Shown: piece after piece, positions 10,886 to 35,909 of the stretch
Layout of the letters: each line of letters opens with the position of its first letter
Numbering within the stretch: the stretch's first letter is position 1
DNA from: Epithemia pelagica
Taxonomy: Eukaryota > Protista > Bacillariophyta
Length of the DNA: 64,000 nt
NCBI GenBank assembly: GCA_946965045.2
Contig: OX337241.1
Span: 2,728,001 to 2,792,000, forward strand
Direction of reading: 5' to 3'
The notes under the pieces: generated by a model
Databases searched by the model: none
What the model saw: only the letters and a program-made list of their open reading frames with translations
Told to the model about the DNA's origin: nothing
Position numbers and translations under genes: made by a program

Positions 10886-11258
10886 ATGTGGTTCTGCCGG
10901 CGAGCCTGTTTGGTCTTGGTCCAAGAGCTCTTCCTACTTCGTATCTGGAGTACCTAGCTCGCCTCTAGCTAGTGCCTCGAGCTAGCTAGAGTAGAGAGGT
11001 CGTCGCTCCGGTCGGATGATGCCCGATCCATGTACTCTCGCTCTATGAATAAAAGGAGGAGGATTAGCACGGAGAGAGCAACGAGGACTAACTGCATGAT
11101 GGAGTGACAATCCTCCATAATAATATATGGATCGGGCATCCTCGACTACCTCTACTATTGTAGATCTACTCTACGAGTAGAGATAGTCGGCATAGCATAG
11201 GGACTCGAGCTCCGAACTCCAGGACCAAGACCAAACAGGTTCGCCGGCAGAGCCACAT
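10886..11258. repeat. Degenerate fold-back (nested inverted repeat), MITE-like
   Basis: 37-nt arms at 10886-10922 and 11222-11258 (35/37). Inner perfect 14-nt arms at 11018-11031 and 11127-11140, and 8-nt arms at 11058-11065 and 11109-11116. Confidence 0.75.
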
Positions 11259-11815: not shown

Positions 11816-14683
11816 ATGACGACGATGACAACGACTGTGGCGACAAGGCCCACCTCCACGGTTGTGCCAACTCGGTCGATGGGGGTTCCCCGACTGTTGC
11901 GGCTGCTTCCTGGTGGGATGCTTGTGTGGGTTCTTCTTTTTGTTGTTGTTGGTGGTGATGCACCACGTGGAATAGCGCAAGCTGTCGCCGCTCGGACGAG
12001 TCGAATGTCACCATCACCACAGCAGCAACAGCAACACGAACCAGAAGATGGTGGTCGAGTCCTCCAGCTACAGTACGGCAAAAAGAAGATGAAGACGAAG
12101 AGCTGGAGGGATTCGCCCGTTCCCACCATGGCACCACCCACTAGCCCCAATACACCGCCATTTACGAATCCTACTCCCACCCAGGCACCCCTGGTCAATC
12201 CCGGGACCTGGTACACCAGTATCGTCGTGCCCATGGTTCCTCCTCCTGCACCACCATCTCCTCATCATCATCCTCCTCCTCATTCGTTCTTCTCCACCTC
12301 GGTTCGGCCGCACAGGGATCATCCAAACGACAAGCAGCAGCAACCACACGGGAAAAAAGAGTCCGTTCCCACGAATAGTCAAAGGAAGAGTACCAAGGAA
12401 TCCAAGCAATTTTCTTTGCCCAAACGCTCCTCCTCCTTGCCCACAAAAAACAAGAAGCAAGGTCACCCCCAAAAGAGGACCCGCACCCAGAAGCGCCAGG
12501 GCGGCAAAAAGGAGCAGCAGCAAAAGCAGCATCCCCCTGGCAAACACGACGACCGGACACCGTCATTCCTCCAATCGTCTCCCACGCAGCAGCATCGTAC
12601 CACCATGGCTCCTACTAGTACTCCCCCGGTGGTGATTCCAGTCCCCACCACACCGTCTTTTCCTTCGTCTGCTCCTTCTTCTTCTGTTTTGTTGGGGATG
12701 GGAGGAAAACAGGCAGCATCATCTTATTCGGGGGGAAAGAAACAAGAATCCTCGGGTAAAAAACAAGGCGTCCATCATAACCGTGAGAATGGCAAGAACC
12801 TGTCGAGAAAGGGCAAGAAAGGGGACCAGAACCGTAGCAGCGGTTCCTCGAATCGGATCAAGAGTACCAAACAAGTCAAGAGTGGGGGCAAACAACCAGG
12901 TGACAAGGATCATGACGACGACAAGAACCTGTCGAGAAAGGGCAAGAAAGGTGACCAGAGCCGTAGTAGCGGTTCCCCAAACCACCGGATCAAGAGTACC
13001 AAACAAGGCACGAGAGGGGGCCAACAGCAAGGCGACAAGGATAACGACGACGACAACCTGTCGAGTCATGGCAAGAAAGGTGACCAGAGCCGTAGCGGTT
13101 CCCCGAATCGTATCAAGAGTACCAAAGAGCGACAAAAGAGTGGCGGGAAACAGCAAGGCGACAAGGATCATGACGACGACAAGAACCTGTCGAGTCATGG
13201 CAAGAAAGGTGACCAGAGCCGCAGTAGCGGTTCCCCGAATCGTATCAAGAGTACCAAACAAGGCAAGAGAGGGGGCAAACAACAACAAGGTGACAAGGAT
13301 CATGGCGACAACAACCTGTCGAGTCATGGCAAGAAAGGTGACAAGCGCAGCAGTAGCGCTTCCCCGAATCCTATCAAGAGTACCAAACAAGGCAAGAGTG
13401 GGGGCAAACAACAAGGCGACAAGGATAACGACAGCAACAACAAACTGTGGAGAAATGGCAAGAAAGGTGACCAGAGCCGCAGTAGCGGTTCCCCGAATCG
13501 TATCAAGAGTACCAAACAAGGCAAGAGCGGGGGCCACCAGCAAGACGACAAGGATCACGACGACGACAAGAACCTGTCAAGTCATGGCAAGAAAGGTGAC
13601 AAGAGCAGCAGTAGCGGTTCCCCCAACCGTATCAAGAGTACCAAACAAGCCAAAAGTGGGGGCCAACAGAAAGGCGACAAGGATCATGACGACGACAAGA
13701 ACCTGTCAAGTCGTGGCAAGAAAGGTGACAAGAGCAGCAGTAGCGGTTCCCCCAACCGTATCAAGAGTACCAAACAAGGCAAGAGAGGGAGCAAACAACA
13801 ACAAGGTGACAAGGATCATGGCGACAACAACCTGTCGAGTCATGGCAAGAAAGGTGACCAGAGCCGTAGCATTGCTCCGAAGCATATCAAAAGCACCAAA
13901 GAAGCCAAGAGTGGGAAAGGTGGTGTCCCACCACCGCACATTCCACCAAATCGCCCACCAACAACTTCCACTCCCACGGTTCGCACAGTTCCGCCTTTTT
14001 CACTTCCACAGCCAATGGTATCCTCGGCCCCTTCCTCGGCCCCTTCCTCGTCGCCGTCGTCCTTGTGGCCGGTCGCACCTTCCAGGACTGCGGTCGAACG
14101 AACGACCAATCCAACGACAACGACAACGAATTGGCCATCCCGCAGTCCAACGACTTCTCCTCCGCCCTCCTCCACGACGACGACGACAACCACAACAACA
14201 ACAACAAGTCCACCTCCGTCCTCGTTCTTCTTCCAGAGTAGTATCCAGGCAGCTGCATCCCAGGCCCCAGGGTCCCAGAATGTGGAACCGACAACGCTTC
14301 CGACTGCCAATGGCGACCCACAATCGTTGGTTGGTCTGGAGGCGTTGGATTCCGAACCACCGACCGAACAACAACAACAACAACAAGTCGAGAATGTGCC
14401 GGCCGTGACTGCGGCCTCTTCGTTGGATTCGACCGGGGACTGGAGTGATGGTAAAAGTGTGGCCTGGGTGGTTCTTGGCAGTGCCCTTGTCCTGGGTGTC
14501 AGTGTGGCTGCCATTCGTTTCTACTACCAATGGCGTCGTCGTCGTCGTCGTCGACAGGGTCCACAGGGTCGGAACCACCCGTACTTCTACCACCAGCACG
14601 ACACGACACGATTCGAACCATTGAGAGCCGCCTGGGTAGAACCGTTCGAGGACCACGACAATGACGACGACACAGTGTCATGA
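11816..14683 (+). CDS. Silaffin/SAP-like type-I membrane protein 1 (signal peptide, RXL, K/S/G/D-rich repeats, P/T/S stalk, TM, basic tail)
   Basis: ORF of about 955 aa from ATG 11816. Features: hydrophobic MLVWVLLFVVVGG, RVLQ..YGKKK, about 9 repeats of ~43 aa, TM SVAWVVLGSALVLGVSVAAIRFYY, then WRRRRRRR. Confidence 0.75.
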   Translation: MTTMTTTVATRPTSTVVPTRSMGVPRLLRLLPGGMLVWVLLFVVVGGDAPRGIAQAVAARTSRMSPSPQQQQQHEPEDGGRVLQLQYGKKKMKTKSWRDSPVPTMAPPTSPNTPPFTNPTPTQAPLVNPGTWYTSIVVPMVPPPAPPSPHHHPPPHSFFSTSVRPHRDHPNDKQQQPHGKKESVPTNSQRKSTKESKQFSLPKRSSSLPTKNKKQGHPQKRTRTQKRQGGKKEQQQKQHPPGKHDDRTPSFLQSSPTQQHRTTMAPTSTPPVVIPVPTTPSFPSSAPSSSVLLGMGGKQAASSYSGGKKQESSGKKQGVHHNRENGKNLSRKGKKGDQNRSSGSSNRIKSTKQVKSGGKQPGDKDHDDDKNLSRKGKKGDQSRSSGSPNHRIKSTKQGTRGGQQQGDKDNDDDNLSSHGKKGDQSRSGSPNRIKSTKERQKSGGKQQGDKDHDDDKNLSSHGKKGDQSRSSGSPNRIKSTKQGKRGGKQQQGDKDHGDNNLSSHGKKGDKRSSSASPNPIKSTKQGKSGGKQQGDKDNDSNNKLWRNGKKGDQSRSSGSPNRIKSTKQGKSGGHQQDDKDHDDDKNLSSHGKKGDKSSSSGSPNRIKSTKQAKSGGQQKGDKDHDDDKNLSSRGKKGDKSSSSGSPNRIKSTKQGKRGSKQQQGDKDHGDNNLSSHGKKGDQSRSIAPKHIKSTKEAKSGKGGVPPPHIPPNRPPTTSTPTVRTVPPFSLPQPMVSSAPSSAPSSSPSSLWPVAPSRTAVERTTNPTTTTTNWPSRSPTTSPPPSSTTTTTTTTTTTSPPPSSFFFQSSIQAAASQAPGSQNVEPTTLPTANGDPQSLVGLEALDSEPPTEQQQQQQVENVPAVTAASSLDSTGDWSDGKSVAWVVLGSALVLGVSVAAIRFYYQWRRRRRRRQGPQGRNHPYFYHQHDTTRFEPLRAAWVEPFEDHDNDDDTVS
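12794..13920 (+). repeat. Coding tandem repeat, ~129-nt unit x ~9 (NLSSHGKKGDQSRSSGSPNRIKSTKQGKSGGKQQGDKDHDDDK)
   Basis: Eight full units and one partial unit are readable in the translation. Confidence 0.92.
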
Positions 14684-15594
14684 TCACCGCCACAACAACA
14701 AGACGACACGAGGTAAAGACTGCTCCTGTTTCTGGTTGTTTGTCGACTCGTGTGTAGAAAACTCAATCTATAACAAATCAAACAGAAACTCCAATTCTTG
14801 TGTATTTTGAAGAAGAAGAAGAAAAGCCTCCCATTAGGAACAGCAACGTCCGTCTGGAACCGGCCGAAAGACAATACACCAAGGCACCAAGGATCCTCCT
14901 TGGTTCCGTCCTGTCTGCCAGTGAACCAAACGGAACGGTTTGTCCAGCCGGTTTCCCAGTCAGTCACTCACTCACTCGTCATTGACAAACCAACAATGAC
15001 CGAGGACTGTAGTTTCTTCCGAGCGGACTCTTTTCAACGGAACAGAAACCAATAGAATTAAGGTGTCATTCGTTCCAAACAAACGACGACAACAAGATGA
15101 TGATCCATTCCACCAACGGACGTTTGACTTGCCAGGGAGCGTCGGCAGTGTGGACAGGGCAGTTCTCGTTCCGAGCCAGATGGAACAGGCAATGATTTCC
15201 CGAGTCCAGGAACGGTACGACTCTTTGAGAAGTGATTTTGTCCTCCTTTTCATAGTTCATCACGAATGCCAACACCATTGGAGGAGGAGGAGCGCTTGCG
15301 GCTTGCGAATCAAGAACCACGACTCTCTGTGTTGGATGGTACTATGGTTTGCTTCAAAATAAGGACGCCAATCACGATTGCACAACAAACGAGAAACCTT
15401 TGGAGGACAACTCTAAAGGAGGCGAAGTAGTTGGCCTCCGTCCAGCCAACGATTCTACCAGCCAATCACAACATATATCCCAATCTGGACGACCTGAACG
15501 GAACACGAAAGCAGGAAAAACTAGCCCCAAATCAAGAATCGTTGACAAGGTCATTTTTCAAAAATTTCGGTACAACGTCTGGCGTTCCAGCTAC

Positions 15595-15608
15595 TTTGGT
15601 CTTGGTCC
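15595..15608 (+). promoter_or_regulatory. Shared upstream motif TTTGGTCTTG(GTCC)
   Basis: The same 10-mer occurs at 10909-10918, 11226-11235 (minus) and 18172-18181, i.e. upstream of each of the three paralogous membrane-protein genes. Confidence 0.35.
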
Positions 15609-16011
15609 AGCGTGCGGTCCCTAAGTGAGTGTTGGTCGTGATTCACTAAGTAAGCATAGACAAGACCAATGTTCGTCGGTCCCACTTACAAACGGCGCTT
15701 TGGTCCGTTTTGAACGCGGGATCCCGCACGCCCGTCGAGCCTGTGCTTACTGTCCCACAAAACTATCAACGATTCCAACAAAGCAACAACATGAATGAAT
15801 GAATGACATGGAGATCCCTACTCTAGAGCCAAATGCCGCGGCTTTGCCGCAGTCCCGGTCCAATCTTCAAACTCCAAAGCACATACAGAAACTAGGGAAC
15901 CGACCACCAGCCAGGAGGATGAGAGCGTCCCACAATTTCACGAGACCCTCCCTTGGCATTCAACGACGTATCGATTACACTACGAATTTATTTCATCTCT
16001 CCAGGACGACC

Positions 16012-17361
16012 ATGATGAACCGCCACTCTCCATCCGGAACCACCACCAGACATCAATGTGTCGCGGTAGTGTGCTGGATACTGTCGCTGACGACGGTGGT
16101 TTTGACAGTTCATGCTGTTCCACAGTCACCACCACAGCAACAATACGAAGAAGCACCATTGCGGGCGAGAGTCCAGGAGGAACACTCCTCTTACATCCAG
16201 TACAGCAACGACTTCCAAGAGTGGTTGGACGAACGACGACAACAACGACGACACTTGAGTGGCAAAAAGGAGAGCAGCAACGGCAAAAAGGAAGCGCAGT
16301 ACGACTACGACAGTCCTACACCGAAACCAGTGACGACTGCCAAGCCCATTTCCTCTCCGACCGACTATCCTTCCTTTTCCCCCAAGCCAACGGCCATGCC
16401 CGTTGCCAGCAAGTATTCCTCCTCGGGCAAAAAGGAGCCGAGCGGCAAGTCCTACTACCAGCAGGACCACACCACGAGCAAGCCCACGGCCAAACCCCAC
16501 GATGACTCTTCTTATTATCATGATTCGGGCAAGAAAGAATCGGGCAAAAAGGAAGCGGGGTACAGCCCCACGGCCAAACCCACGACCAAACCCACCTCCA
16601 AACCCAATGGCGTTCCGACCCCGTCACCCACCGCAACGGACGACGATTCGTATGATTGTTGGGGCAGTGGCAAAAAAGAAGCGAGTCACTGTCCGAGACG
16701 ACCAACCGGAAAACCGACCTCCAAACCCACGGGCAAAAAAGAGTCGATTCGCCAACCGACACCGCATCCGACCGGCAAACCAACTCCTAAACCCACGCCA
16801 AAGCCGACTCCCAAACCCACGCCAAAGCCAACTCCCAAACCCACATCCAAGCCAACCGCCAAGCCCACTGCCACCACCACAATGGCACCGACGGTACTTG
16901 TACGCACAGGACTGACGGGTTCCACTTCGTCGCCGCCGACGGTGGTCCCCAGTGCAATGCCCAGCGCTCATCCCAGTAGCGTCCCCAGCGAGCGCCCGTC
17001 GCAATCTCCCAGTGCCAAACCCACCACGGCTTCCACCACGTCGTCTCCGACGTTGTCTCCCTCGACCGGTCCCACGTCGGGCAGTACGACAGTCGTGACT
17101 CAAGCCGTGCAAGCGGAACCGACGGAAACGGCGCAAACCGACCGGAGTTCACCCGAGTCGGTCAATCCGGCATCGTCGTCGTCATCGTCCTCGGCATTCA
17201 AGGGGACTCCGTGGTTGATTGCCAGTGCCGGATCCTTGGTGGTGGTGGCCGCCTTGGCCAATGAATGGCGTCGACGACGACAGAGTTGTACCACTGGTAA
17301 CGCGGCCGCCAATTCGACGGAACCCTATCAAGAATTGCCCGAACCGGGCGTCTCGTCGTAA
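16012..17361 (+). CDS. Silaffin/SAP-like type-I membrane protein 2 (~449 aa)
   Basis: ATG 16012 precedes the signal peptide VAVVCWILSLTTVVLTVHA. Then RRHLSGKKES, recurring SGKKE and PTxKP repeats, TM PWLIASAGSLVVVAALA, EWRRRR and PYQEL. An upstream ATG at 15799 is also in frame. Confidence 0.78.
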   Translation: MMNRHSPSGTTTRHQCVAVVCWILSLTTVVLTVHAVPQSPPQQQYEEAPLRARVQEEHSSYIQYSNDFQEWLDERRQQRRHLSGKKESSNGKKEAQYDYDSPTPKPVTTAKPISSPTDYPSFSPKPTAMPVASKYSSSGKKEPSGKSYYQQDHTTSKPTAKPHDDSSYYHDSGKKESGKKEAGYSPTAKPTTKPTSKPNGVPTPSPTATDDDSYDCWGSGKKEASHCPRRPTGKPTSKPTGKKESIRQPTPHPTGKPTPKPTPKPTPKPTPKPTPKPTSKPTAKPTATTTMAPTVLVRTGLTGSTSSPPTVVPSAMPSAHPSSVPSERPSQSPSAKPTTASTTSSPTLSPSTGPTSGSTTVVTQAVQAEPTETAQTDRSSPESVNPASSSSSSSAFKGTPWLIASAGSLVVVAALANEWRRRRQSCTTGNAAANSTEPYQELPEPGVSS

Positions 17362-18567
17362 GAACAGACAGGGCAGCTTGGTCGTTTGGCACAAAAGAGT
17401 GTGCCTACGTCTTGCTTGGGTGACATGTATGCAATTGACCCTGCAAGCAACATTTGGTAGTATAGTAGAATGTAGTTTTTTCTTCAATGTCTCTCTTGTG
17501 TTTGTGGAGGCCACAAGTCACACTTTGGCAACCCGACCAAGTCCTTTTCGTCACCAGTCTTCATGTAATTTTGCAACGAGAAAGACGAGAAAGAGTTCAA
17601 TCCGTCCTGCTGCAGTAGAAACGACTCCGCCATGCTGTTTTGGAAGCAATCATGGTGTTGGTTCATCGTTCATGGAGAGTCACTCTCTTCTCCTAGCTAG
17701 CAACACAGAATGATGATGATGATGTTGTTTGATGCGAGTGTCAAGAATCCATCGATTCGGAAGCATCCACATCATGGTATCCAAAAAAATTGGGAATCGT
17801 GCGTTTTTGGGGTCTATCGTTTTATGGAATGGCAGAGAGATGCCGCTCTGTCTTGTGGTGATGATTGCTGTGTCTTGTTCAATGAAAAACAGCGAGCACT
17901 GCGACCATTGGCTTTGTCGTAGTGTGAAACAATGTATCGTGAAGAACCCGTGCAAGAGTCCCTAGTCCTCGGACACTACGAGTCGCTCCACGAGAGTGAG
18001 AGTGGATCCATATTCGTGTGCATGGACTCCATGGTCCGAGCAGAGGCAGGCACTGTGAAAAAGTAAAGGAACGCAGGGTGTCCATGGTCCGAGATGGGAC
18101 AAGAGATGCACATGGCTCGAGTCCGTTGAAAACGCTAGTGTAGCCGTCATCATGTGTTTTATCCTTAAGTGTTTGGTCTTGTACGGGATCGCGCTCCTGC
18201 ACTCACGATGGACCTTGGATGGTCTTTCGTTGACCCACACGAACGGCACAGACCGGGACTTGCATCAAGACTATCGATATCCGTTGAATCACATTCAAAC
18301 CTATGTGTTTGTAGATAGTAATGTTGAACCAATTAGATCAACGGATGCACGCCTGTCGACTCTGTGTCCAATTCATTCGGACCACAAAAATGACGCGCCA
18401 CCACCAAAGTTGCCATCTTTTGCTTCTACGCGATTGGACCAAGAGGAGGAATTCCTCGCCACCTTCTCGCTTTTACACATTTTCTCTCTCGAGTCTCATA
18501 ATTTTGGTTTCAGCTCTCAGCTCTTGGCCACGGACCGAACAATCACAAACGACCTAAATTTTCAACC

Positions 18568-20301
18568 ATGATGAGACAAACCACCACCACCACAGCCTTG
18601 CTCGTTCAACTCTTCTTTCTGGTACTGGCATGTTCCACTACTCCCACTAGTCAAGCGCGACAACAACTCCAGCAGAAACCCAACCACTATACCAAGGTCG
18701 TGCCCCCAACGACGACGACAATGGTCAATGTTACGGCCTGGTCCTTGGTGGCCGACAACGAGGCACCGACACTGCAGTCTCTCTTGTCCGTGACGACTCG
18801 TCGGCAGTCCACACGAGCCCTTGGTAAGAGCGACAAGAAGCAAAAGAGCAAAAAGAAGGAAAAGAGTAAAAAGGATTCGGACGACGACCATCCTCCCACC
18901 AAGGCCCCGACCAAGGCCCCGACAATGCCCTCGTCCGGATACGCTCCGGAACCAACACACGCTCCCATTTACAAAAAGAGCGAAAAGAAGGATAAGAAGG
19001 ATAAGAAGGATAAGAGTGAAAAGAAGGATAAGAGTGAAAAGAAGGAAAAGAGCGAAAAGAAGGATAAGAGTGAAAAGAAGGAGAAGAGCAAGAAGAGTGA
19101 GAAGAAGGAGAAGAGCAAGAAGAGTGAGAAGAAGGAAAAGGGCAAAAAGAGCGAGAAGAAGGAAAAGAGCAAAAAGAGCGAGAAGAAGGAAAAGAGCAAA
19201 AAGAAGGAAAAGAGCAAAAAGAAGGAAAAGAGCAAGAAGGATTCGGACGACGACCATCCTCCCACCAAGGTCCCGACCAAGGCCCCAACAATGCCCTCGT
19301 CCGGATACGCTCCGGAACCAACACACGCTCCCATTTACAAAAAGAGCGAAAAGAAGGATAAGAAGGATAAGAGTGAAAAGAAGGATAAGAGTGAAAAGAA
19401 GGAAAAGAGCGAAAAGAAGGATAAGAGTGAAAAGAAGGAGAAGAGCAAGAAGAGTGAGAAGAAGGAAAAGAGCAAGAAGAGTGAGAAGAAGGAAAAGAGC
19501 AAGAAGAGTGAGAAGAAGGAAAAGAGCAAAAAGAGCGAGAAGAAGGAAAAGAGCAAAAAGAGCGAGAAGAAGGAAAAGAGCAAAAAGAGTGAGAAGAAGG
19601 ATAAGAGCGAGAAGAAGGAAAAGAAAGAAAAGAGCAAAAAGAGCGAAAAGAAGGAAAAGAAGAGCAAGTACGATCACGACGATTCCAGCAAGAGTCACAA
19701 AATGAAGAAAAAGAGCAAGAGCAGCAAGTATGCCACATATGCTCCCACCTCTTCTCCCACGTCCAAACCCACGTACATGCCGACATTTTCTCCCACGGCC
19801 ACTCCAGAGGATTTGAATCGAGCGGGGTTGACGACCATTATTACCCCCACACCTCCTCCTACGGCTGCTCCCACCACGGCGTCTCCCACGCTCCATCCCA
19901 CAATGACTCCCACCCTGTCTCCCACGGCTTCTCCCACTGTGAAACCCACCATTTCTCCCTCGGAGGTCCAAGACTTGACCGTGACCACCGCCGCTCCCTC
20001 GAGTGCTCCCACTACTCCATCTCCCACCGCAGTCGTGGTCCAGACGGCCGTGGCCGAAACACTTGCCACGTCTCCCAAGGCGAGTCCCTTGTCCTTTGAA
20101 GAATCGGACCGTGATTATTTGCCATGGGTGACCATTGCCGGTGGCATTGTCATTGGTGCGGCCGCCATTGCCTTGGAATGGAGACGGCGAGTGCAACGGC
20201 AACAACCACAATCACCACAAGAGGCTCCGCGTCGCGATCCGTACCAAAACATGGAGGATGACGACATGGTGGATGTCAGTGTCGACGAAGGAACGGCCTA
20301 A
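18568..20301 (+). CDS. Silaffin/SAP-like type-I membrane protein 3 (577 aa)
   Basis: Signal peptide ALLVQLFFLVLACS, RALGKSDKK, long (KSEKKEKSK)n tracts, PT-rich stalk, TM LPWVTIAGGIVIGAAAIAL, EWRRR and PYQNM. Confidence 0.82.
   Translation: MMRQTTTTTALLVQLFFLVLACSTTPTSQARQQLQQKPNHYTKVVPPTTTTMVNVTAWSLVADNEAPTLQSLLSVTTRRQSTRALGKSDKKQKSKKKEKSKKDSDDDHPPTKAPTKAPTMPSSGYAPEPTHAPIYKKSEKKDKKDKKDKSEKKDKSEKKEKSEKKDKSEKKEKSKKSEKKEKSKKSEKKEKGKKSEKKEKSKKSEKKEKSKKKEKSKKKEKSKKDSDDDHPPTKVPTKAPTMPSSGYAPEPTHAPIYKKSEKKDKKDKSEKKDKSEKKEKSEKKDKSEKKEKSKKSEKKEKSKKSEKKEKSKKSEKKEKSKKSEKKEKSKKSEKKEKSKKSEKKDKSEKKEKKEKSKKSEKKEKKSKYDHDDSSKSHKMKKKSKSSKYATYAPTSSPTSKPTYMPTFSPTATPEDLNRAGLTTIITPTPPPTAAPTTASPTLHPTMTPTLSPTASPTVKPTISPSEVQDLTVTTAAPSSAPTTPSPTAVVVQTAVAETLATSPKASPLSFEESDRDYLPWVTIAGGIVIGAAAIALEWRRRVQRQQPQSPQEAPRRDPYQNMEDDDMVDVSVDEGTA
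18830..19670 (+). repeat. Hierarchical coding repeat: K/S/E micro-repeats inside two larger units that each start DSDDDHPPTK.PTKAPTMPSSGYAPEPTHAPIY
   Basis: gattcggacgacgaccatcctcccaccaagg occurs at ~18873 and ~19240, each followed by aagagcgaaaagaaggataag-type arrays. Confidence 0.9.
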
Positions 20302-21490: not shown

Positions 21491-23005
21491 ATGGCGGAAG
21501 TGGAACGTGCAATTCCGAAACGCCAAGTGTTGGATCCCATGGCCGTGGTAAAGGAGTATGCCGCCTTGCCGCGGTTGGAATATCGAACGATTGCCGGTGT
21601 GAATGGTCCCTTGGTGATTTTGGATCACGTCAAATTGCCCAAATTTGCCGAAATTGTCAATTTGCGTCTCGGCGATGGCACTTTGCGGTCGGGTCAAGTG
21701 TTGGAAGTGGCCGGTCACCGTGCCGTCGTGCAAGTCTTTGAAGGGACGGCCGGCATTGACAATCGCAAAACCGTGTGTGAATTTACCGGCGATGTGTTGA
21801 AAATGGGTGTGAGTGAAGAAATGTTGGGTCGTTCCTTTAATGGTTCCGGAAAGGTGATTGATTCGGCACCCAAGGTGTTGGCCGAAGCCTATTTGGACAT
21901 TAACGGCCAACCCATTAATCCCAGCAGTCGCGATTACCCCAAGGCCATGATTCAAACGGGAATTTCGGCCATTGATGTCATGAACAGTATTGCGCGGGGA
22001 CAAAAAATCCCCATTTTTTCCGCCGCCGGCTTGCCCCACAATGAAGTGGCGGCCCAAATTGCCCGTCAAGCCAGTTTGGTCCAACAAAAGGATACCATGG
22101 ATGGCCATGAAGAAAACTTTGCCATTGTCTTTGGCGCCATGGGGGTCAATATGGAAACGGCCCGCTTTTTCCGTTCCGACTTTGAAGAATCGGGGGCCAT
22201 GCAACGGACGGCTCTCTTTTTGAACTTGGCCAATGATCCCACCATTGAACGTATCATTACGCCCCGCTTGGCCTTGACCACGGCCGAGTATTTGGCCTAC
22301 GAACGCGATTTGCATGTCTTGGTCATTTTGACCGACATGAGTTCCTATGCCGATGCCCTGCGCGAAGTGTCGGCCGCTCGTGAAGAAGTCCCCGGTCGTC
22401 GTGGTTACCCCGGATACATGTATACCGATTTGAGTACCATTTACGAACGGGCCGGTCGTGTCGTGGGCCGCAATGGGAGTATTACCCAATTGCCCATTTT
22501 GACCATGCCCAATGACGATATTACCCATCCCATTCCCGATTTGACGGGCTACATTACCGAAGGTCAAATTTATTTGGATCGACAATTGCATACCAAAGGT
22601 ATTTTCCCGCCCATTAATGTGTTGCCCAGTTTGAGTCGATTAATGAAGTCCGCCATTGGCGAAGGCATGACCCGATCCGATCATGGCGCCGTGAGTAATC
22701 AATTGTATGCCAGTTATGCCATGGGCAAGGATGTCATGGCCATGAAGGCCGTCGTTGGAGAAGAAGCCCTTAGTATGGAAGATCACTTGTACCTCAACTT
22801 TTTGGAACGCTTTGAAGGCAAGTTTGTCAGTCAAGGTCCCTACCAGGCGCGTACTATTTTTGAATCCCTCGATTTGGCCTGGTCCATTTTGCGAGCCTTT
22901 CCCAAGGAACTGCTCAAAAAGATTCCCAAAAAGACCCTCGACAAGTTTTATGCCCGTCGTCGGGAAGCCGCTGAAGATCGCAACCAAGCCGATGGATCGG
23001 CCTAA
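21491..23005 (+). CDS. VHA-B: V-type proton ATPase subunit B
   Basis: Intronless 504-aa ORF with hallmark motifs [61 protein letters not shown] and [16 protein letters not shown]. Confidence 0.98.
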
Positions 23006-26629: not shown

Positions 26630-27724
26630 TCATGTCGAGGTGGAGAAGCAATTCGAATCAGCATCTCGGGTCCCCATTCCTTCCAGTGAATGAAAACATC
26701 CGTTTGGATGCTGCTCGCAGAGTCGCTGAAAACACCATGTATTCTTGTCCATCAGTGGTAATGTCGCACAGGATGGATTGACAACTCCACCAATCACGGC
26801 AACTTGATTGGCAACAGTCACCATAGAGCAGTTTTCATGGCGATTTTCGAATGGTGGGAGATTCCACGTGCGGTTGCGGTGCGTGTCCCAGACTTCCACG
26901 GTTTGATGGCTTCCACCCGCCACCACCAGACAGGATCCCATGGTAGTCATTGTACATGAACCCCGAGGGGCAGAAAACACCAGATCAGAGTGAGTCGTCC
27001 AGCTAGACAAGGAGGAAATGAATGTAGACAGAGTGTTGTTTCTCTTCTCATTGTCACTAGGCGTTCCAAAGTCCAAATACTCTACTGTCGAGCCTCCAAC
27101 GACAAAGATGCGGTGGTCAACGACCGCACTGGCACAAAATAATCGAGGAACAGTCATATTTGGCCCCGCAATGACAGTTTGGTTGCTAGTATCAAGAATA
27201 TCCACCGACGACAAGCTTTGCTCTCCATCCCATCCACCCATGACTACAAGGTATCTATTGTGAACCACAACAGCACAACATCCGTTTCTTCTTATTGATA
27301 GTCGACAATTCAAAGTTGTCCAATGACTCTCATGCGTGCTGCTTGATGTCGAAGATTGTTGTAGCAAATCGCTGGCATTAATTTGTTCGATACAATCCAG
27401 AGTGTTTCCATTATATCCTCCCATCACGTATATGCCTCCATTGCACCCAACAGCGGCAAGTCCGTTACGGCTCTTGTTCATGGGTGGTCCTACGCGCCAC
27501 TGCTTGTTTCGTTCTGCTAAATTCAATATAAGCACGGAATTGGTGGCACCTTCTTGTTTCACTCCTCCCATCACGACGACCGTATGATCGAGTACAACCG
27601 ACGCATGAAACGCACGAAATCCTCCCTCAAGTCCCTCAAGAGAAGGCCAATCGTTTTCATTCCATTCTACTCTCTCTTCCGAAAGGAAAAGTCCCGACTT
27701 GTGTGCTTGTTCTTTCAGTGTCAT
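26630..27724 (-). CDS. Kelch-repeat-only protein, paralogue 1
   Basis: Kelch blades GG..-W..GPPMNKSR, YVMGGYNG..LDCIE, VVMGGWDG..LSSVDILD and IFVVGG. ATG at 27724. Confidence 0.9.
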   Translation of the reverse strand: MTLKEQAHKSGLFLSEERVEWNENDWPSLEGLEGGFRAFHASVVLDHTVVVMGGVKQEGATNSVLILNLAERNKQWRVGPPMNKSRNGLAAVGCNGGIYVMGGYNGNTLDCIEQINASDLLQQSSTSSSTHESHWTTLNCRLSIRRNGCCAVVVHNRYLVVMGGWDGEQSLSSVDILDTSNQTVIAGPNMTVPRLFCASAVVDHRIFVVGGSTVEYLDFGTPSDNEKRNNTLSTFISSLSSWTTHSDLVFSAPRGSCTMTTMGSCLVVAGGSHQTVEVWDTHRNRTWNLPPFENRHENCSMVTVANQVAVIGGVVNPSCATLPLMDKNTWCFQRLCEQHPNGCFHSLEGMGTRDADSNCFSTST

Positions 27725-30336
27725 GTTCACGGTTCCAAACGTTGACTGCAGAATTTATGAGGATCGAGACACTGTATTGTTAGAGGTTCTTGGGTTTGCT
27801 GCTGCTCTGATGGGTGTGGACTGGAATCACGACTGACTTGACGAAATGTGGATGGATCGAAACACGAGCGATGGGTACTCGTAGCTTTCGTCGCGAGGCA
27901 AATCGTGACCGAAATACACCTCACGCGAGACAGGCAACAAATGGCAGGATTGGTGCGATTCGTTTCCGTCAATTGAAATTGTACTTGCTTCTTCTTGTGC
28001 TGCATCTCTTGGCCTGTATCGGAGCGAACGAATGCCTTGCTGTTGGAATGGTATTCGATACTTGAGTTGGTGGTGTTGGGTTTCTTCAGAGCAGGAGCAT
28101 TAACACACGATGTCAGTGGTAATTCGTTGTCCGTAGTATGATTCGTCCTGTGTTCTCATGTCTGTTATTTTGACCAGGACCTCTGTCTCTGCTTCTTCTT
28201 CTCTTCATCGTCTCTTCTTCGTCGTCGTCTCATCTCCTTCTTGTCATTCCTGTCGGGTCTATCGAAGATACACCCAGCACAACGTCGAAACAGGCAAAAT
28301 ATTTTCCCGATGCATGCAAAGGGTGCGCGATTGCAAGGTGGTTCGGTGTCTGTTACTAGAAGCAACGGCAGGTCGAGACAGACGAAAATGTAGTGATGGA
28401 ATCCATGATGCGGCCTTGCAATCTGCATGCTTTGGTTGGAAACTTGAGACTCGAGAGATACGGATGAGCACACCAAAACATTCATCGTCCATTGTCGATT
28501 GTCGTCGACGACGGTCTGGCCCGACGTCGTCTGCCCGTTGAACAATCACCAGAACGTCTTGTCCACATCAGGCTCTGCTGCTTTCTGTCTCGTCTTGTTT
28601 CACATTTACAACGATCACTCGATACGAAAAGCCCCGACTTCCATGCTTGTTCTTTTGCCCCGTGTCATGGCCATGGTGAACTTTTTCATGCGTCCGCCAC
28701 GTACGGAGGACGGACGGTCGATCAAAACGTTGATGAAAGGCGAGCGCTGGGGGGGGGCAAACAATAAGCGACGAAACACCCTTTTTTGCGTTCACCCCCA
28801 AATCCCAATATCAGTTTGTATCTTTTGCATCACTCTTTGTGTGATTATACATCCTCACAGCTCGACGCATCATCTGTCAATGGTGGAGAAGAAGGTGGTA
28901 TGGTTTTGCGTTGGAGGAACCAGAGTGGCGTGAAAAAGCCACCTGCAATCGTGGAGTAGAAATGTGTCCATCTGCAGCATGACAGCACTCTCCTTTTGTG
29001 GGGAGAGGCAAGACAAAGAAGCTGCAACGACTGTGTGGGTCCAACCGTCCACCATTGTGGCCACTGGGCCGTTTGGACCGCTGGAAAGAACCGCCGACAA
29101 CTTTTTTTTCACCACCAAACGATGCCACGCTCTCGATTCTAATGACTTTCGACAACAAGGAACTGCGGTGATGGTATGGCGATTGTTGCTCCACAGTAAG
29201 GGTTCGTGCTCTTGACTTGGTCACGGTGGCCATCGTTTCATGGATGCATCAGACTTGTGCCATGCTTGGTGGACACCCATACGAATGAGTGAACAAGTCA
29301 CCTAGTTTGTCGGCCCCTATCACGTTCCAGACAAATCCTCTCGATTTGTACTTGCCGTCGCAGCCGCCATATGCTTGATCAGGACCCGTTGGCCACCACT
29401 GTCACTGGTCCCAAAATTCACCATGAATGGCACCACCACACCAGTACCAAGTCGTCATTCCTGTCGGATCTGTCGGATTCGGGGAGCATCCCCTGCCACA
29501 TGGATTTTCCGTTGTACGGTCCACCTTTTGGATTGATGACTGACTGAAACGATGCATGGGTTGTGCGGTAATATGAATCTTCCATTGACCATTTCGTATG
29601 ATGCATGTATATCATGACTGTCGTACTGACAAGGAGAGATCAGGAGGTTCCACAACGACGAGAGAGCTACAGCAACAACAGGCTTGGCGGTGGGTCGAGC
29701 GACTTGTGTAGCACCACTACCACGATCCATCGCAACAAAACACGCCGCGTCAAGAGCGAGGTAGTTTGGCGGAGGATATCACGACGACTCTTTCACCTTA
29801 GGTCGCCCTTTTGAAGGCGGCGGTGTCACCTTCCCACACGAAAAGAGACAATCATACCATGCGTTGCACTGCGGCCATCGTGTATAGGACACACGATGAC
29901 GACCAGCTCATGTCTGGGCAACCACACCGAATAGCCCTCGTCTGCGACGACCGGACAAAGCTCTTGTATTCTTGAATGCACTACAAGATAATCACAATCA
30001 GTCTTTCTTGACACTTGTTCTCTTCGCTCAGTAACATTCGGCGTGAGCTCTCATAGCTTGCCAAAAGCCATGATCTACTGATGATTGAGGAACCTAGATC
30101 ATGGCAGTTCCTCTATACAACCACGGACATGCTTCAAAAGTTGTCCCAACCTTTGACAGATTGTGTTGCTGAAGTTGATTTCCAATTTGAGATTAGATTA
30201 ACTACTAGGATATTCACGATCTCAATAGCTTAGCGATTCCATATCCTTTGTTCGAGAGTTTACTTTCCATGCTATTAGTGTTTCCACGGTCTTGGACATG
30301 CAACCTGTTGTCCGATTTCAAGTGCCATCCTTTTCT

Positions 30337-31527
30337 TTATGACAATGGAATGCGTGAATTGGTCCTCACACGTTTACCGGTTGATACCGAGGTGGAGCAG
30401 GATGTAACATTGATTTCCCGGATACCCATATCTTCCAGAGAATGGAACCATTCGTTGGGATTCTGCTTACAGAGTTGACGAAAGCACCACGTATTCTTGT
30501 CCATCAGTGGTACTGTCGCGCAGGTAGGATTGCCACTTCCACCAATCACGGCAATTTGATTGGCAACACTCACCATAGTACAGACATTGCGGTGATGACG
30601 GAATGGTGGGAGATTCCACATGCGGTTGTGATGTGTGTCCAAGATTTCCACAGTTCCATTGTTTTCCGCCACCACCAGACAGAATCCCACGGTAACCACT
30701 GCACAACAATGCCGTGGGTCGGAAAGTACCAGATCAGAGTGAGTCGTCCAGCCAGACAAGGAGAAAATGAATGTAGACAGAGTACCGTTTCTCTCCTCAT
30801 TGTAGCAGGGCTTTGCAAAGTCGAAAATTTCCACCGAGTCAAGATCGCCGCCCTCGTTAAAGCCTCCAACGACAAAGATGCGGTGACCAATGACCGCACT
30901 GGCACACCATAGTCGTGGAACAGTCATATTTGGTCCCTCTATGACCGTGTGGTTGCTGGTATTAACAATATCCACCGACGGCAAAAAACGACCGTTGTGT
31001 CCACCCATGACAACAATATATCGATTGTGAACCGCAACAGCACAAACTCCTTCTCGAACCGTTGATAAGCAACATGTCAATGTCGTCCAGTGACTCCCAT
31101 GTGTGGTACTGTTTGTCAACGAAGATTGCACGACATCATTGGCATCAATTCGTTCCACACAATCCAACAACGAATAGTAGTTATTGCGTCCTCCCATAGC
31201 GTAGATGCCTCCATTACACACAACAGCAGCATGTCTATAACGTTTCTGGTTCATAGGCGGTCCTTCTCGCCATTGCTTGTTTGATTGTGCTAAGTTCAAT
31301 AACAAAACGGAGTTGACAAAGCCTTTGTGTTGTTGTCTTCCTCCCAACACCACGACCGTCTGTCCATTGTTGTTATTGTCCTGATCGGGATGATCCAGTA
31401 CGACTGACGCATGATCGTGACGCCATCCACCCTCGAGAGGAGGCCAGTCGTTTTCATTCCATTCTGCTCTGTCGTCCGATAGAACAAGGCCCGACTGCCA
31501 TGCTTGGTCTTTCAGTGTCAAATTCAT
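30337..31527 (-). CDS. Kelch-repeat-only protein, paralogue 2
   Basis: 396-aa ORF collinear with paralogue 1; kelch GG..W motifs. Confidence 0.9.
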   Translation of the reverse strand: MNLTLKDQAWQSGLVLSDDRAEWNENDWPPLEGGWRHDHASVVLDHPDQDNNNNGQTVVVLGGRQQHKGFVNSVLLLNLAQSNKQWREGPPMNQKRYRHAAVVCNGGIYAMGGRNNYYSLLDCVERIDANDVVQSSLTNSTTHGSHWTTLTCCLSTVREGVCAVAVHNRYIVVMGGHNGRFLPSVDIVNTSNHTVIEGPNMTVPRLWCASAVIGHRIFVVGGFNEGGDLDSVEIFDFAKPCYNEERNGTLSTFIFSLSGWTTHSDLVLSDPRHCCAVVTVGFCLVVAENNGTVEILDTHHNRMWNLPPFRHHRNVCTMVSVANQIAVIGGSGNPTCATVPLMDKNTWCFRQLCKQNPNEWFHSLEDMGIREINVTSCSTSVSTGKRVRTNSRIPLS

Positions 31528-33173
31528 GGTTCCAAACGGTGACTGCAGACCATGGTCGGTGAACTCGAGTTACAATATATCTATATATATGCGGGCAGGA
31601 ACGTCCACCACGTACAGAGGACGGACGGTCGATCGTTGGCGGTGAGGGGGGGGCGCACACCCCTGTTTTGAGTTAACCCCCAAATCCCAATATCTTTGTT
31701 CGGGTGGGTATATCTTTTCACAAGAGAAAAGCTCACGGTCGGTGCAATGAACAGCTCGACCGATCATCTGTCCATGGTGGAGAAGAAGGTTTGGTTTTAC
31801 GTTGGAGGAACCAGATGTCGAAACCCATGGTTTGTGGCGGACAGGAGCAAACCATGTAGTCACTCGATTGCACTACGATTATGACGACTACACCCAACAG
31901 CAACAACAACCACAAACTGGCCCAGCTTCTACCCATAAAAACAACAACAACAACAATCGTCACATGCACAACAGGCATTCTGTTTTGTCCTCCTTCTTGC
32001 TATTTCCGATATCAGTGAATGAATGGTTTCGATCGACGCATCAATAACTTGTAGTCCAAATGACAACAACCACAACCATCAGTCGGTTATGGTTATTTGG
32101 AACAAGGGCCACCACCAGCACAGCCTTGGGAATCGTAACATCACCATATATTAATAACCGCGTCGACAGGTTTGGGGCTCCGCAAAGACATTGGCACCAA
32201 GAAAGAGGAACCAACAACGACCCTTCATAACGACAAAACACGAGTCAAAAACGACAATGGCACCACTACAACGACATCTACAATGCTCATTTGGTATGAT
32301 GCATCAGCATCGGACCTTTGGATCCCCTTGTTTCGTCATTTTTGTCGGAGTCATCGAACATGACCATGAACCACACGACAAAACAAGGCACGGACAGATA
32401 CAGAGACTCATGGTGCGTGGTGGAAGCGAGCAAAGTTCAAGTATCCAAGGAGCAAAGACCACGCAGTCCTTCGATTGCCCTACAATGATGACAACAACAC
32501 CCAAAAACTCTTTCATCAAGGAGAGCACGGCAAGAGCTGAAAACTCAGGATTCTTTATCCACCAACAGCACCAATACAACAATCGTCGTAAACACAACAG
32601 GCATCCCGTTTTGTCCTCCTTCTCGCAATTTCCAGAAATTGGAAGGAATGAATGCTTTCGATGGAGACACAATTCAGGCCGTTCCTTCCACGTCCAAAAG
32701 ATGCAGCGAGACCATCAAAGACCGTCGTCATTAATCGAAAGATGAGTCATTCTATTCCAGACCAGAGAGTATTCAACACCAAAGAGAGGAGCGGGACCAT
32801 GGTCATCCACCCAAGAGTGATTGCCAGAAATCCGCTAGGTAGTTTGCAGAGGACAGCAGACGCTGTAACATCTCATTACGGATAGCTTACCATGGCCAGA
32901 GGGGTGCGACTGCCGCAGACGCCATCGCATCAGAAAGAAATTCATGTGCGGTCATATGCTATAAGGCGGTGCTTCGAACATGCTAGGAGTTTCTCTCTAA
33001 TCCCTGAACCTAAAACTATACGATTAATAATGTAATTAAGAACTGCCACGATGTCCTGTTTTGTATGAGAGTATAATGACCATGATACAGTTTCCGGGCT
33101 CTTGGACGTGTAACGTGTTGGACATTTCAACTGCCATGCTTCCCTTTGTCGCAATCACAATCATCTAAGGTCC

Positions 33174-34343
33174 TCAATCGTTTAAGAGTCGACGACGAGA
33201 TGGTGCAGGATCTCCGTTGCCCGATCTTTCATGACAATGATACCATTCAATCCAAGGCTGCTGGCAGAGTTGACGAAAACACCATGTATTCTTGTCCATT
33301 AGTGGTAATGTCGCAGAGGACGGATTGCCCATTCCACCAATCACTGCCATTTGATCCGCCAGAGTCACTGCACTGCAGCCATCGCGCCTTTTCTTTCCCA
33401 ATAGCGGGAGATTCCACACGCAGTTGCGGTTCGTATCCAAGACATCCACAGTTTGATTGGCTACCCCTCCCGCCACCACCAGACAGGATCCCACAGTCAC
33501 CACGGCACAAGAACTTCGTGCTCTGGAAAGCACCACCTCAGAATGAGTGATCCACGTGGACGAGAAAGAAATGAATGTTGAACCACTCTCCTCCTTTGTA
33601 TCCTCATTGTCACAAGGTGTTGCATAGTCCAAATACTCCACCGAGTCAAGAAAGGCGCCCTCGTTATAGCCTCCAACGACAAAGATGCGGTGGCCAGCGA
33701 CTGCACTGGCACAAAATGATCGGGGAACATTCATGGATGGCCCGGCAGTGACAGTATGATTGCTGGTGTCAATAATCTCAACCGAGGACAACCAGTGTGA
33801 GTTCCATCCCCCCAGTACAACAATGTATTGATTGTTTACCGCCACAGCACAACAACCACATCGTCGCGTTGATAACCGGCATGTCAATGTCGTCCAATGA
33901 CTCTCATGTGTGCTCCTTGTTGTGGAAAGTGATTTCAGCAAATTGTTGGCATCCATTCGTTCCATACAATCTAACACTGGATTTTCACGATTCCATCCTC
34001 CCATCACGTAGATGCCTCCGTTGCACACAACAGCGGCATGTTCCTCACGGCTCTTGTTCATGGTCGGCCCTTCTCGCCACTGCTTGTTTGATTCAGATAA
34101 GTTCAATACTAGAACGGAACTGGTGGGCCCTTGGCCTTGCTGATTTCCGCCCATCACGACAACCGTTTGTCCCTTGTGGTTGCGATTGTCGTCCTTATTA
34201 TCGCGATGATCGAGTACGACTGACGCATGAAAGTCTCGCGCTCCACCCTCGAGAGGAGGCCAATCGTTTTCGTCCCATTCTACTCTCTCGTCCGATAAAA
34301 CAAGGCCCGACTGCCATGCTTGTTGTTTCAGAGTCATGGTCAT
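33174..34343 (-). CDS. Kelch-repeat-only protein, paralogue 3
   Basis: ATG 34343 (MTMTLKQQAW); kelch motifs as in the other paralogues. Confidence 0.9.
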   Translation of the reverse strand: MTMTLKQQAWQSGLVLSDERVEWDENDWPPLEGGARDFHASVVLDHRDNKDDNRNHKGQTVVVMGGNQQGQGPTSSVLVLNLSESNKQWREGPTMNKSREEHAAVVCNGGIYVMGGWNRENPVLDCMERMDANNLLKSLSTTRSTHESHWTTLTCRLSTRRCGCCAVAVNNQYIVVLGGWNSHWLSSVEIIDTSNHTVTAGPSMNVPRSFCASAVAGHRIFVVGGYNEGAFLDSVEYLDYATPCDNEDTKEESGSTFISFSSTWITHSEVVLSRARSSCAVVTVGSCLVVAGGVANQTVDVLDTNRNCVWNLPLLGKKRRDGCSAVTLADQMAVIGGMGNPSSATLPLMDKNTWCFRQLCQQPWIEWYHCHERSGNGDPAPSRRRLLND

Positions 34344-35190
34344 GGTTCCAAACGGTGACTGTAGATTAATGAGGATCAAGACACACTGTACTGTGAGAGG
34401 TTCTTAGGTTGGCTGCTGCTCTGATGGGTGCGGACTGGAAGCACGACTGACTTGCCGAAATGGATGGATCTTATCACGAGCGATGGGTAGCTTTCGTCAC
34501 GAGACAAACTGTGACAGTAATAGTCACACCAAAGGAAGAACCCCACGCGGAAGGTGTTGGATGATATCGAAATAATCTGCTCGCGGCGAGACAAACAACT
34601 AATCCTTTCAAAATTCGCAGATCAAGAAAGTATTGGTGCGATTCGTTTGCATCATTTTGTGGTTGTGGTAAAGCTCCACAGTCTGTCTGGTTGTTGGTTC
34701 CCAACGAATAAGCAACAACACTGCAGAGGCCGTGGATGGAGAGACATGGGTAGTTTTGCACGTCGGGGAAGGAATTTGCTTGAATGAGACGGTGATTCAA
34801 CCGGTTGTTGTTGGCGCTGCTCTTGTTGTTTCATCCTGCAAGTACTGCTGGTCGTGAGTTCAATATCGTAGTGTTGTACAAGGTGATTCGACCTGTTGTT
34901 GTTCCATCCTGTGATTAGTACTGCTGGCGGTCGGTGCAATGCCTCAGCATTCCAGATGACTATGGCTGTCTATCATTGTCGTAATACGACTTGTCCGGTC
35001 ATTGTTGTTTGCCAGTCCCTCCCAGCGAGTTTCAATTTGTAGAACCCCAGCGGCGCAATACAAAGGACTAGGGCCCTGCTGCTACCGGGTCACGACATGG
35101 CTTGCTAATACGATGCATGCAAACGGTAACAGGACGACGGTTTGTTTGTCTCTCGTTGCTGCTGTTGCTGTTGTTGTTGTGTGGTGTTCG

Positions 35191-35276
35191 TGTTGTGCTT
35201 AGTATCGGAATGATTGAGTACGACCGTAGTCGTCATGCTAGGGTCGTACTTAATCATCCCGATAATAAGGACGACA
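35191..35276. other. Kelch-derived hairpin A (40-nt arms, 6-nt loop), candidate small-RNA precursor
   Basis: Arms 35191-35230 and 35237-35276 pair with 33 WC, 3 G:U and 4 mismatches on the + transcript. The right arm matches kelch-3 sense sequence (34182-34229). Confidence 0.6.
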
Positions 35277-35909
35277 ATCATTGCGCTACATTTCAGTAAA
35301 GCGGTAAAAGGACCGTAGCCATCGTAGCTATTATACTCCAATGAACACAAAACTCACAAGAACGCGTGGAAGCTGTTTGACCTTTTGTGGTGTCTGTCAT
35401 GCGTCCACAGAAAGGAGATCGCACATAAACTACATGACAGAAAGCAGATCTTTTTTGTGTCCATCCAAAGCTTTCTCGCTCTATAAAATCAATGGTTCTC
35501 CCCTCTATGTATGCATGGAGATGGTAGATTCATGTCCCTCTTTACAAAGACAACGTTGTGCCGGAGGTATCCTTCTTCCTGACACAACAACACAACAGTA
35601 ACAACAAGTCCAAAAGGTCACAGCCGCTCGGTACGTTGAAAAACAAGAGTTGAATCGTTCTCTGTCTCGTTCTACTATTAGTTTTACAAGGAAACCTACA
35701 TTGGATACTCATCTCTCGTCTCTTTCACAGGATTGTCCTTCTCTTGTTTAACAAAAACAGACTGCAGTATGATTCGTTGGGAACGGAACATGGTCAGATC
35801 CGATCCAGTCCTGGTATTGGTTGCTACACAGGGTGATGTTGTCTGATGCTGCACACAGGGATAGTAGCGTTGTCGTGGTGGTGGTGGTTGATGGTATACC
35901 GAATGCACA

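Follow-up and report, generated by a model that had tools for sequence, protein, structure and literature searches.

What do three neighbouring genes of the diatom Epithemia pelagica encode, and do their products act at the silica cell wall? The genes, here called g1, g2 and g3, are three long open reading frames (ORFs) found in the ORF list of the plus strand of a 64-kb stretch of contig OX337241.1 (assembly GCA_946965045.2, positions 2,728,001 to 2,792,000), hereafter the window, to which all coordinates refer (Table 1). The initial annotation of the locus had presented them as membrane-anchored silaffin-like proteins and as a candidate new family of the silicalemma. We give roughly even odds (a probability of about 0.5) to the reading that g1-g3 are frustule- or silica deposition vesicle (SDV)-associated, membrane-tethered, lineage-specific silaffin-like proteins.

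The public record of the window is contig ctg1341l of the European Nucleotide Archive (ENA) assembly ERZ21939226. The same assembly holds a second contig, ctg1277l, on which g1-g3 and the gene for V-type H+-ATPase (V-ATPase) subunit B stand in identical order. We compared positions 11491-33005 of the window with positions 245778-267292 of ctg1277l, and each of the three proteins could thus be read in two versions. The two syntenic contigs are either very divergent haplotypes or homeologous copies; their V-ATPase B proteins are identical.

All three proteins are built from the same parts in the same order: an N-proximal hydrophobic segment, a propeptide, an RXL tripeptide, a Lys block, Lys/Ser repeats, a Pro/Thr/Ser stalk, a transmembrane (TM) helix and a tail. 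The hydrophobic segments are two per protein, one N-proximal and one lying 32-51 residues before the C-terminus, with a Pro/Thr-dense stalk upstream of each TM. The Lys-rich repeats are unrelated in sequence among the three, and the proposal of one architecture filled with gene-specific repeats was therefore borne out. The mature ectodomains contain 11-31% Lys (31% in g3) and 15-18% Ser, with isoelectric points (pI) of 9.7-10.3. They are disordered and polycationic, and the stalk is probably glycosylated. Cys is scarce in the proteins as a whole (0 in g1, 5 in g2, 1 in g3).

Two elements of the proposed plan fit g1 and g3 but have to be corrected for g2. The initial annotation had described the repeats as rich in KxxK and Ser: g1 has 28 KxxK motifs and g3 has 79, whereas g2 has none and carries nine scattered GKKE motifs in a Tyr/Ser/Thr/Pro-rich sequence. 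It had also assigned a signal peptide to each protein. The hydrophobic N-termini of g1 and g3 show the expected small residues (cleavage sites were read by eye from the -3/-1 rule), but the corresponding segment of g2 lies about 85 residues behind the in-frame ATGs at 15799 and 15808.

The junction between propeptide and Lys-rich part is alike in the three proteins. Each ectodomain contains exactly one RXL (g1 RVL-QLQYGKKK, g2 RHL-SGKKE, g3 RAL-GKSDKK), followed after 0-3 residues by the first Lys-dense 10-mer. The propeptides, 27-55 residues long, have no or almost no Lys; indeed, only 0-2 of 38-138 lysines lie upstream of the RXL on the window contig, and 0-3 on the second one. The pattern is identical on both contigs, in agreement with the earlier claim that RXL immediately precedes the Lys block. 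From composition alone, 0.14-1.2 RXL per ectodomain would be expected: it is the position of the motif at the Lys junction, and not its presence, that exceeds chance.

The C-terminal end is equally regular. In the alignment of the six sequences (three genes on two contigs) the W at the TM start and the WRRR at its end are invariant, and the stalk, the W-initiated TM, the (E/Q)WRRR and the short tail are found as they had been described. The TM starts with (A/P)W and is followed by (Q/E)WRRR, with 3-7 Arg behind the membrane in each protein, and then by tails of 32-51 residues carrying [ED]P[YF]. The three tails (14528-14680, 17263-17358 and 20176-20298) have 121 residues in all, 20 of them Arg and none Lys, a composition that possibly reflects avoidance of ubiquitin acceptor sites or of cytosolic Lys-modifying enzymes. 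No other ORF of the window combines a TM with WRRR. Judged from these topology signals, the arrangement fits a lumenal or extracellular ectodomain with a cytosolic tail.

The sequence comparisons indicate that g1-g3 are tandem paralogues. The TM segments of g2 and g3 align with E = 2e-4, and the two proteins have a common RRQxxRxL(S)GK junction. Furthermore, a hidden Markov model (HMM) of the g2 and g3 tails gives the g1 tails 15 and 24 bits, whereas the best of 2000 shuffles reaches 10.7. By alignment, constraint is strongest in the parts common to all three proteins: between contigs, the g2 TM and tail are 100% identical, against 89-93% elsewhere in g2, and g3 is 100% identical from its N-terminus through the RXL.

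Long ORFs can arise by chance in low-complexity DNA that also has long ORFs on the opposite strand, and g1-g3 could in principle be non-functional frames of this kind. Antisense ORFs of 279-549 aa do overlap g1 and g3, and the automatic, prokaryote-style gene calls of the public record picked minus-strand low-complexity ORFs there (window 12719-14681 and 18562-20069). Against this explanation, all three frames are open on both contigs despite strong divergence (synonymous divergence, dS, of 0.19 for g1, 0.15 for g2 and 0.06 for g3), and the ratio of nonsynonymous to synonymous divergence (dN/dS) is below 1 in each gene (0.55, 0.27 and 0.23, respectively). Nucleotide differences at codon positions 1/2/3 of the plus frames are 42/35/76 in g1, 20/10/55 in g2 and 11/3/19 in g3, and this third-position excess settles the plus strand as the coding one. 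The contigs differ in repeat number, always in frame: g1 has 955 aa on the window contig and 731 aa (224 fewer) on the second, with 229 gap columns in the alignment, within the Lys-rich part. The signal/TM/tail plan common to the three genes and the full conservation of the g2 TM and tail also speak against chance frames.

Coverage in public data points the same way. Four public runs hold the stretch, two of them with flat, DNA-like depth. In run X4, and less clearly in run X3, the genes are covered and depth falls to zero in the spacers 15254-15742 and 18188-18350. The transcript-like contigs of g2 start at 15756 (X4) and 15749 (X3) and end at about 18030; for g3, coverage returns from about 18514 in X4, and the X3 contig starts at about 18492. 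From the shape of their coverage, the two runs would be RNA-like. No joint with adequate flanks in the run contigs suggests an intron in g2. The three same-strand genes of the initial annotation are thus confirmed by open frames on two contigs, dN/dS and the third-position excess: g1-g3 are real, fast-evolving coding genes under purifying selection, and we consider it very improbable that they are non-functional. Because the calls of the record lie antisense to g1 and g3, protein collections lack the real proteins, and in similarly annotated diatom assemblies genes like g1-g3 would be invisible to protein-level searches.

Do g1-g3 belong to a wider family? The Pfam scan of the three proteins gave sub-threshold noise only (Trp_oprn_chp, PT). 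The search with whole g1 found only its second-contig copy, and none of the 83 candidates of the g3 tail-region search reached E <=10. The 102 matches of whole g2 were all KPTPKPT/PT low-complexity hits to unrelated bacterial and eukaryotic proteins, and were discarded as not homologous. An exhaustive HMMER search of a 64-position TM and tail profile against 1.84 billion representatives returned the second-contig g1 and two unrelated proteins only, although so short a profile may miss distant members. Both of the latter were rejected on inspection: a kelch protein, matched through a generic Ser-run/TM/RRR segment, and a 58-aa peptide. Two metagenome scans, one with the g2 tail and one with the g3 tail, each yielded about 600 pattern matches, of which tblastn confirmed none. 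In an exact-sequence look-up, g1, g2 and g3 were absent from the protein collection, which says little given the antisense calls of the record.

As far as these searches reach, g1-g3 have no detectable relative outside the assembly, low-complexity sequence being hard to match and unannotated diatom genomes effectively unsearched. The suggested new family did not gain members: the TM and tail HMM leaves three paralogues and their second-contig copies only. Lack of homologues and variation in repeat number are typical of silica proteins, 21 of which were reported as species-specific (bioRxiv 10.1101/2021.09.18.460806).

We then compared g1-g3 with the silica-associated proteins described so far. 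The composition screen of Scheffel, as cited in PMC3478156, asks for a signal peptide and for >=18% Ser and >=10% Lys within 100 residues. All three proteins, with their signal-type N-termini, pass it on both contigs: g1 has 202 qualifying windows, g2 37 and g3 89, against 31, 10 and 114 on the second contig. Like the silaffins and silaffin-like proteins (SFLPs; TpSil1-4; Scheffel et al. 2011; Brembu et al. 2017, PMC5501833), the three proteins combine a putative endoplasmic reticulum (ER) signal, an RXL propeptide site, Lys/Ser-rich low complexity at the 18% Ser/10% Lys level, PT repeats and lack of homologues. PT repeats accompany many silaffin-like proteins, TpSil1 included (PMC5501833), and RXL cleavage sites were reported to be known so far only from biosilica-associated proteins (PMC5647440). 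g3 also has the pentalysine motif, K..K..K.{1,2}K..K (five Lys in 12-14 aa), which occurs in 29% of soluble silica proteins and in 1.5% of background proteomes (bioRxiv 10.1101/2021.09.18.460806): we counted 63 matches in g3 (61 on the second contig), 1 in g1 (0 on the second contig) and 0 in g2. They differ from silaffins and SFLPs in being membrane-anchored with a conserved tail, and in the residues between the lysines, which are E, K, D, T or Q instead of S or G.

Silica-associated low-complexity proteins with a membrane anchor were known before. Type I precedents are Sin1 (PMC5525289) and SAP1/3 (PMC5647440), and 18 single-TM proteins are listed in the silica proteome of three species (bioRxiv 10.1101/2021.09.18.460806). 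With SAP1-3 of Thalassiosira pseudonana (PMC5647440), g1-g3 have in common a signal peptide (putative in g1-g3), an N-terminal RXL, a Ser-rich lumenal region, a single TM and a short cytoplasmic part opening with a basic cluster; both groups consist of several paralogues with low overall similarity. The SAPs are defined by a 28-aa cytoplasmic domain beside the TM (RRK..HPL.G..KR.KLF in the supplement) and lack KXXK (PMC5647440). The core strings of this domain (HPL.G and K[RK].[KR]LF, from the TpSAP1-3 supplement) are absent from all six sequences. Conversely, the tails studied here read (E/Q)WRRR...[ED]P[YF], g1 and g3 are rich in KXXK, and the proteins are 2-4 times longer.

In Sin1, an RXL domain of 30 aa precedes an NQ-rich domain containing 18 Cys, which is followed by a TM and a tail of 20 aa (PMC5525289); its homologues occur throughout the diatoms at E <1e-50 (PMC5525289, PMC5501833). 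Sin1/SiMat7-like proteins resemble g1-g3 in type I topology, in the signal (putative in g1-g3) followed by a short RXL domain and in a short tail without known motifs. The difference lies in the folded, conserved Cys/NQ domain of Sin1, in contrast to disordered proteins with 0-5 Cys and no homologues. With the cingulins CinW/CinY and their lysine-enriched regions (PMC9650480), g1 and g3 share clustered K(X)2K motifs that might serve as such targeting regions, and g2 has some Tyr. Alternating W-/Y-rich domains are missing from g1-g3, the X is not S or G, and a TM is present; the candidate screen of PMC9650480 allowed no TM. In general, the likeness to silaffins, Sin1 and SAPs put forward by the initial annotation stands for the general plan, and not for the defining SAP and silicanin domains or for K[SG][SG]K, which are absent.

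If g1-g3 are tethered silaffin-like proteins, they would enter the secretory pathway as disordered, polycationic and probably glycosylated chains, held by one C-terminal TM with the tail in the cytosol. The one RXL would be the site at which the Lys-free propeptide is cut off, following the example of silaffins, cingulins and Sin1, and the exposed Lys/Ser part would look into the SDV lumen or lie on the plasma-membrane face turned towards the frustule. In either place it could bind the polyanionic silica or its organic matrix by electrostatic attraction, perhaps once its Lys are alkylated and its Ser phosphorylated, with the Pro/Thr stalk acting as a spacer. The juxtamembrane Arg-only block, the [ED]PYQ[EN][LM] of g2 and g3 and the acidic ends of g1 and g3 might serve adaptor-dependent trafficking. 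The anchor may finally be shed and the lumenal part left in the silica, like Sin1 and SAP3.

Several observations weigh against this reading. The screen of Brembu (PMC5501833) asks for repeated K[S/G][S/G]K, 1-6 residues apart; none of the six sequences has the repeat, and a single copy is the most that any of them contains. g2 lacks both KxxK and pentalysine, and g1 has pentalysine on one contig only. Even for g3, 49% of composition-matched shuffles give at least one pentalysine match, and its matches are due to sheer Lys density. None of the searches above revealed homology to any validated silica protein. Lastly, any membrane mucin has this architecture, and a generic mucin or adhesion role fits it equally well.

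The last point brings in the strongest competitor, in which g1-g3 would be silica-independent, mucin-like glycoproteins of the plasma membrane: a cationic, disordered brush on a glycosylated stalk, which would anchor or order anionic mucilage or extracellular polymeric substances (EPS), mediate adhesion or shield the cell surface, with the YxxPhi and acidic signals of the tails explained by ordinary endocytic recycling. The nearest neighbours by ESM-Atlas features are MUC21/22, Mucin15, Mid2-type and arabinogalactan-like proteins; at scores <=0.78 these are leads only, and according to the tool's calibration one third of shuffled proteins reach scores below 0.8. Membrane mucins (MUC21/22, Mucin15, fungal Mid2) do have a signal, disordered repeats, a Pro/Thr/Ser stalk, a single TM and a short tail, a likeness of architecture that comes with no Pfam domain match. 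The strict K[SG][SG]K motif of silaffins and cingulins is missing, 10 N-x-S/T sequons occur in g1, and a Pro/Thr stalk, a TM and a basic stop-transfer block are generic features. On the other hand, extreme Lys content and an RXL junction are not mucin features, and the mucin explanation leaves the conserved single RXL at the Lys junction, the Lys-free or nearly Lys-free propeptide and the Lys-free tail without a reason. We regard it as a serious though doubtful alternative.

The sorting motifs of the tails admit another explanation. YxxPhi sequences (YQEL, YQNM) together with acidic clusters are typical of proteins cycling between the trans-Golgi network (TGN) and endosomes. g1-g3 could be membrane proteins of some other acidic or secretory compartment (endosome, vacuole or secretory granule) with no structural role in the wall, where lumenal polycations, with pI of 9.7-10.3, would condense or carry polyphosphate, sulphated polysaccharides or the counter-ions of long-chain polyamines. 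This proposal is purely inferential: nothing but the sorting motifs sets it apart, and these fit SDV traffic too. We consider it quite unlikely.

Table 1. Position in the window of g1-g3 and of their recognisable parts.
Gene	Feature	Position	Strand	Size or basis
g1	Whole gene	11816..14683	+	955 aa from first ATG; likely signal-peptide Met at 11879
g1	Signal-peptide-like segment (MGVPRLLRLLPGGMLVWVLLFVVVGG...GIAQA)	11879..11983	+	Hydropathy peak; cleavage site by eye
g1	RXL (RVL), sole one in ectodomain, directly before QLQYGKKK	12056..12064	+	Kept on second contig
g1	Tandem array, 129 bp x 8.7	12793..13915	+	Repeat analysis
g1	Pro/Thr/Ser stalk	13883..14395	+	P+T up to 28 per 40 residues
g1	TM helix (VAWVV...RFYY) and QWRRRRRRR	14459..14554	+	Hydropathy, alignment
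g1	Cytosolic tail, Lys-free, with VEPFED and acidic end (DHDNDDDTVS)	14555..14680	+	
g2	Whole gene	15799..17361	+	520 aa from first in-frame ATG; 517 from 15808; 449 from Met 16012
g2	(ATGA)4 microsatellite at 5' end	15791..15806	+	Holds in-frame ATG 15799
g2	N-proximal hydrophobic segment (CVAVVCWILSLTTVVLTVHA)	16051..16116	+	Hydropathy; AlphaFold helix 80-102
g2	Lys-free propeptide ending in RHL (16249-16257)	16117..16257	+	Predicted helix ending at RXL
g2	Ser/Tyr/Lys-rich region with most of the nine GKKE motifs, no KxxK	16258..16698	+	
g2	Pro/Thr stalk including KPTPKPT repeats	16699..17208	+	Weak sub-threshold Pfam PT match
g2	TM (PWLIASAGSLVVVAALAN) and EWRRRR	17209..17280	+	Hydropathy; 100% identical between contigs, with tail
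g2	Tail with EPYQEL (17320-17337), YxxPhi-type motif	17281..17358	+	
g3	Whole gene	18568..20301	+	577 aa; ORF
g3	Putative signal peptide (MMRQTTTTTALLVQLFFLVLACSTTPTSQA)	18568..18657	+	Hydropathy; cleavage by eye
g3	Propeptide ending in RAL (18814-18822)	18658..18822	+	RRQSTRALGK resembles g2 RRQQRRHLSGK
g3	Polycationic arrays (KSEKKEKSKK)	18823..19707	+	357-bp unit x2, 27-bp KSEKKEKSK units
g3	Pro/Thr/Ser stalk	19708..20121	+	Weak sub-threshold Pfam PT match
g3	TM (PWVTIAGGIVIGAAAIAL) and EWRRR	20122..20190	+	
g3	Tail with DPYQNM (20236-20253) and acidic end (EDDDMVDVSVDEGTA)	20191..20298	+	

The unit of the g1 tandem array is a zwitterionic repeat of 43 aa, NLSSHGKKGDQSRSSGSPNRIKSTKQGKSGGKQQGDKDHDDDK, with one N-L-S sequon each.

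The start of g2 deserves separate consideration. The transcript-like contigs begin about 45 nt before the (ATGA)4 microsatellite, which also generates three mini upstream ORFs (two of 3 codons, at 15791 and 15795, and one of 7 codons, at 15803), and other reads carry one additional ATGA unit. The ATG at 15808 lies in good context, and the frame is open on both contigs for the 71 codons from 15799 to Met 16012. g2 may therefore start 71 residues earlier than Met 16012 (68 from the ATG at 15808), and the microsatellite could switch translation between a long and a short N-terminal form. With translation from 16012 the segment CVAVVCWILSLTTVVLTVHA would be a signal peptide, and with translation from 15799 or 15808 a signal anchor; the lumenal orientation of the Lys-rich part would be unchanged under either start.

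The single-sequence AlphaFold model of g2 has a mean predicted local distance difference test score (pLDDT) of 47 and shows four helices, three of them confident, with most of the rest below 50. The confident helices are the two hydrophobic segments and a propeptide helix of 36 residues (116-151, window 16144-16257), in which the means of 10-residue blocks peak at 89-91. This is the only confident non-membrane element of g2 and ends exactly at RHL; on the basis of the model, it may present the cleavage site.

A GACCAA(GA) core precedes each of the three genes (11222-11236, 15661-15669 and 18436-18444), its distance from the ATG being about 590 nt in g1 and about 130-140 nt in the other two. 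We rejected it as a shared promoter motif: three 9-mers are common to the upstream regions against 0.035 expected from shuffles, yet with six invariant bases only the signal is too weak.

Directly downstream of g3, on the same strand, lies the gene for V-ATPase subunit B (21491-23005), whose product is 94-98% identical to diatom sequences, pennate and centric alike, including those of Nitzschia, Entomoneis and Trieres. In diatoms, acidification of the SDV requires V-ATPase. In a eukaryote, a functional link cannot be read from neighbouring positions alone. Further on, at least four single-exon kelch-repeat genes form a cluster in 26630-42884 (26630-27730, 30337-31527, 33174-34379 and 41727-42884). 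Beyond them, at 44728-49389, lies an ORF of 1553 aa from a Ty1/copia-type retroelement, with RVT_2 and gag pre-integrase domains.

Coming back to tethered silaffin-like proteins, models of wall morphogenesis call for proteins that span the silicalemma, interact chemically with silica on its inner side and make sorting or cytoskeleton contacts on its outer side. Validated examples of such spanning proteins, Sin1 and SAP1/3, are without KXXK-type clusters, whereas classical silaffins have the clusters but are soluble. g3, and less so g1, appear to combine both, and would thus be direct candidates for tethered templating; the combination of KxxK/pentalysine arrays, a type I anchor and a conserved tail is not described in the silica-protein papers cited here. 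Composition-based candidates are numerous in diatom genomes, and g1-g3 are to be taken as well-defined candidates and not as a discovery. A stronger version, which we hold to be unlikely, is that the three proteins are the first true membrane-spanning silaffins, in which polyamine-bearing Lys clusters in the SDV lumen would be covalently joined by one helix to a conserved Arg-only/[ED]PYQ tail read by adaptors or the cytoskeleton. If this were true, they would provide the long-postulated physical link through which cytoplasmic patterning positions silica-nucleating peptides, and allelic variation in repeat number would tune the dimensions of the nanopattern. The natural variation of repeat number between alleles would lend itself directly to testing the effect of domain length on silica pattern.

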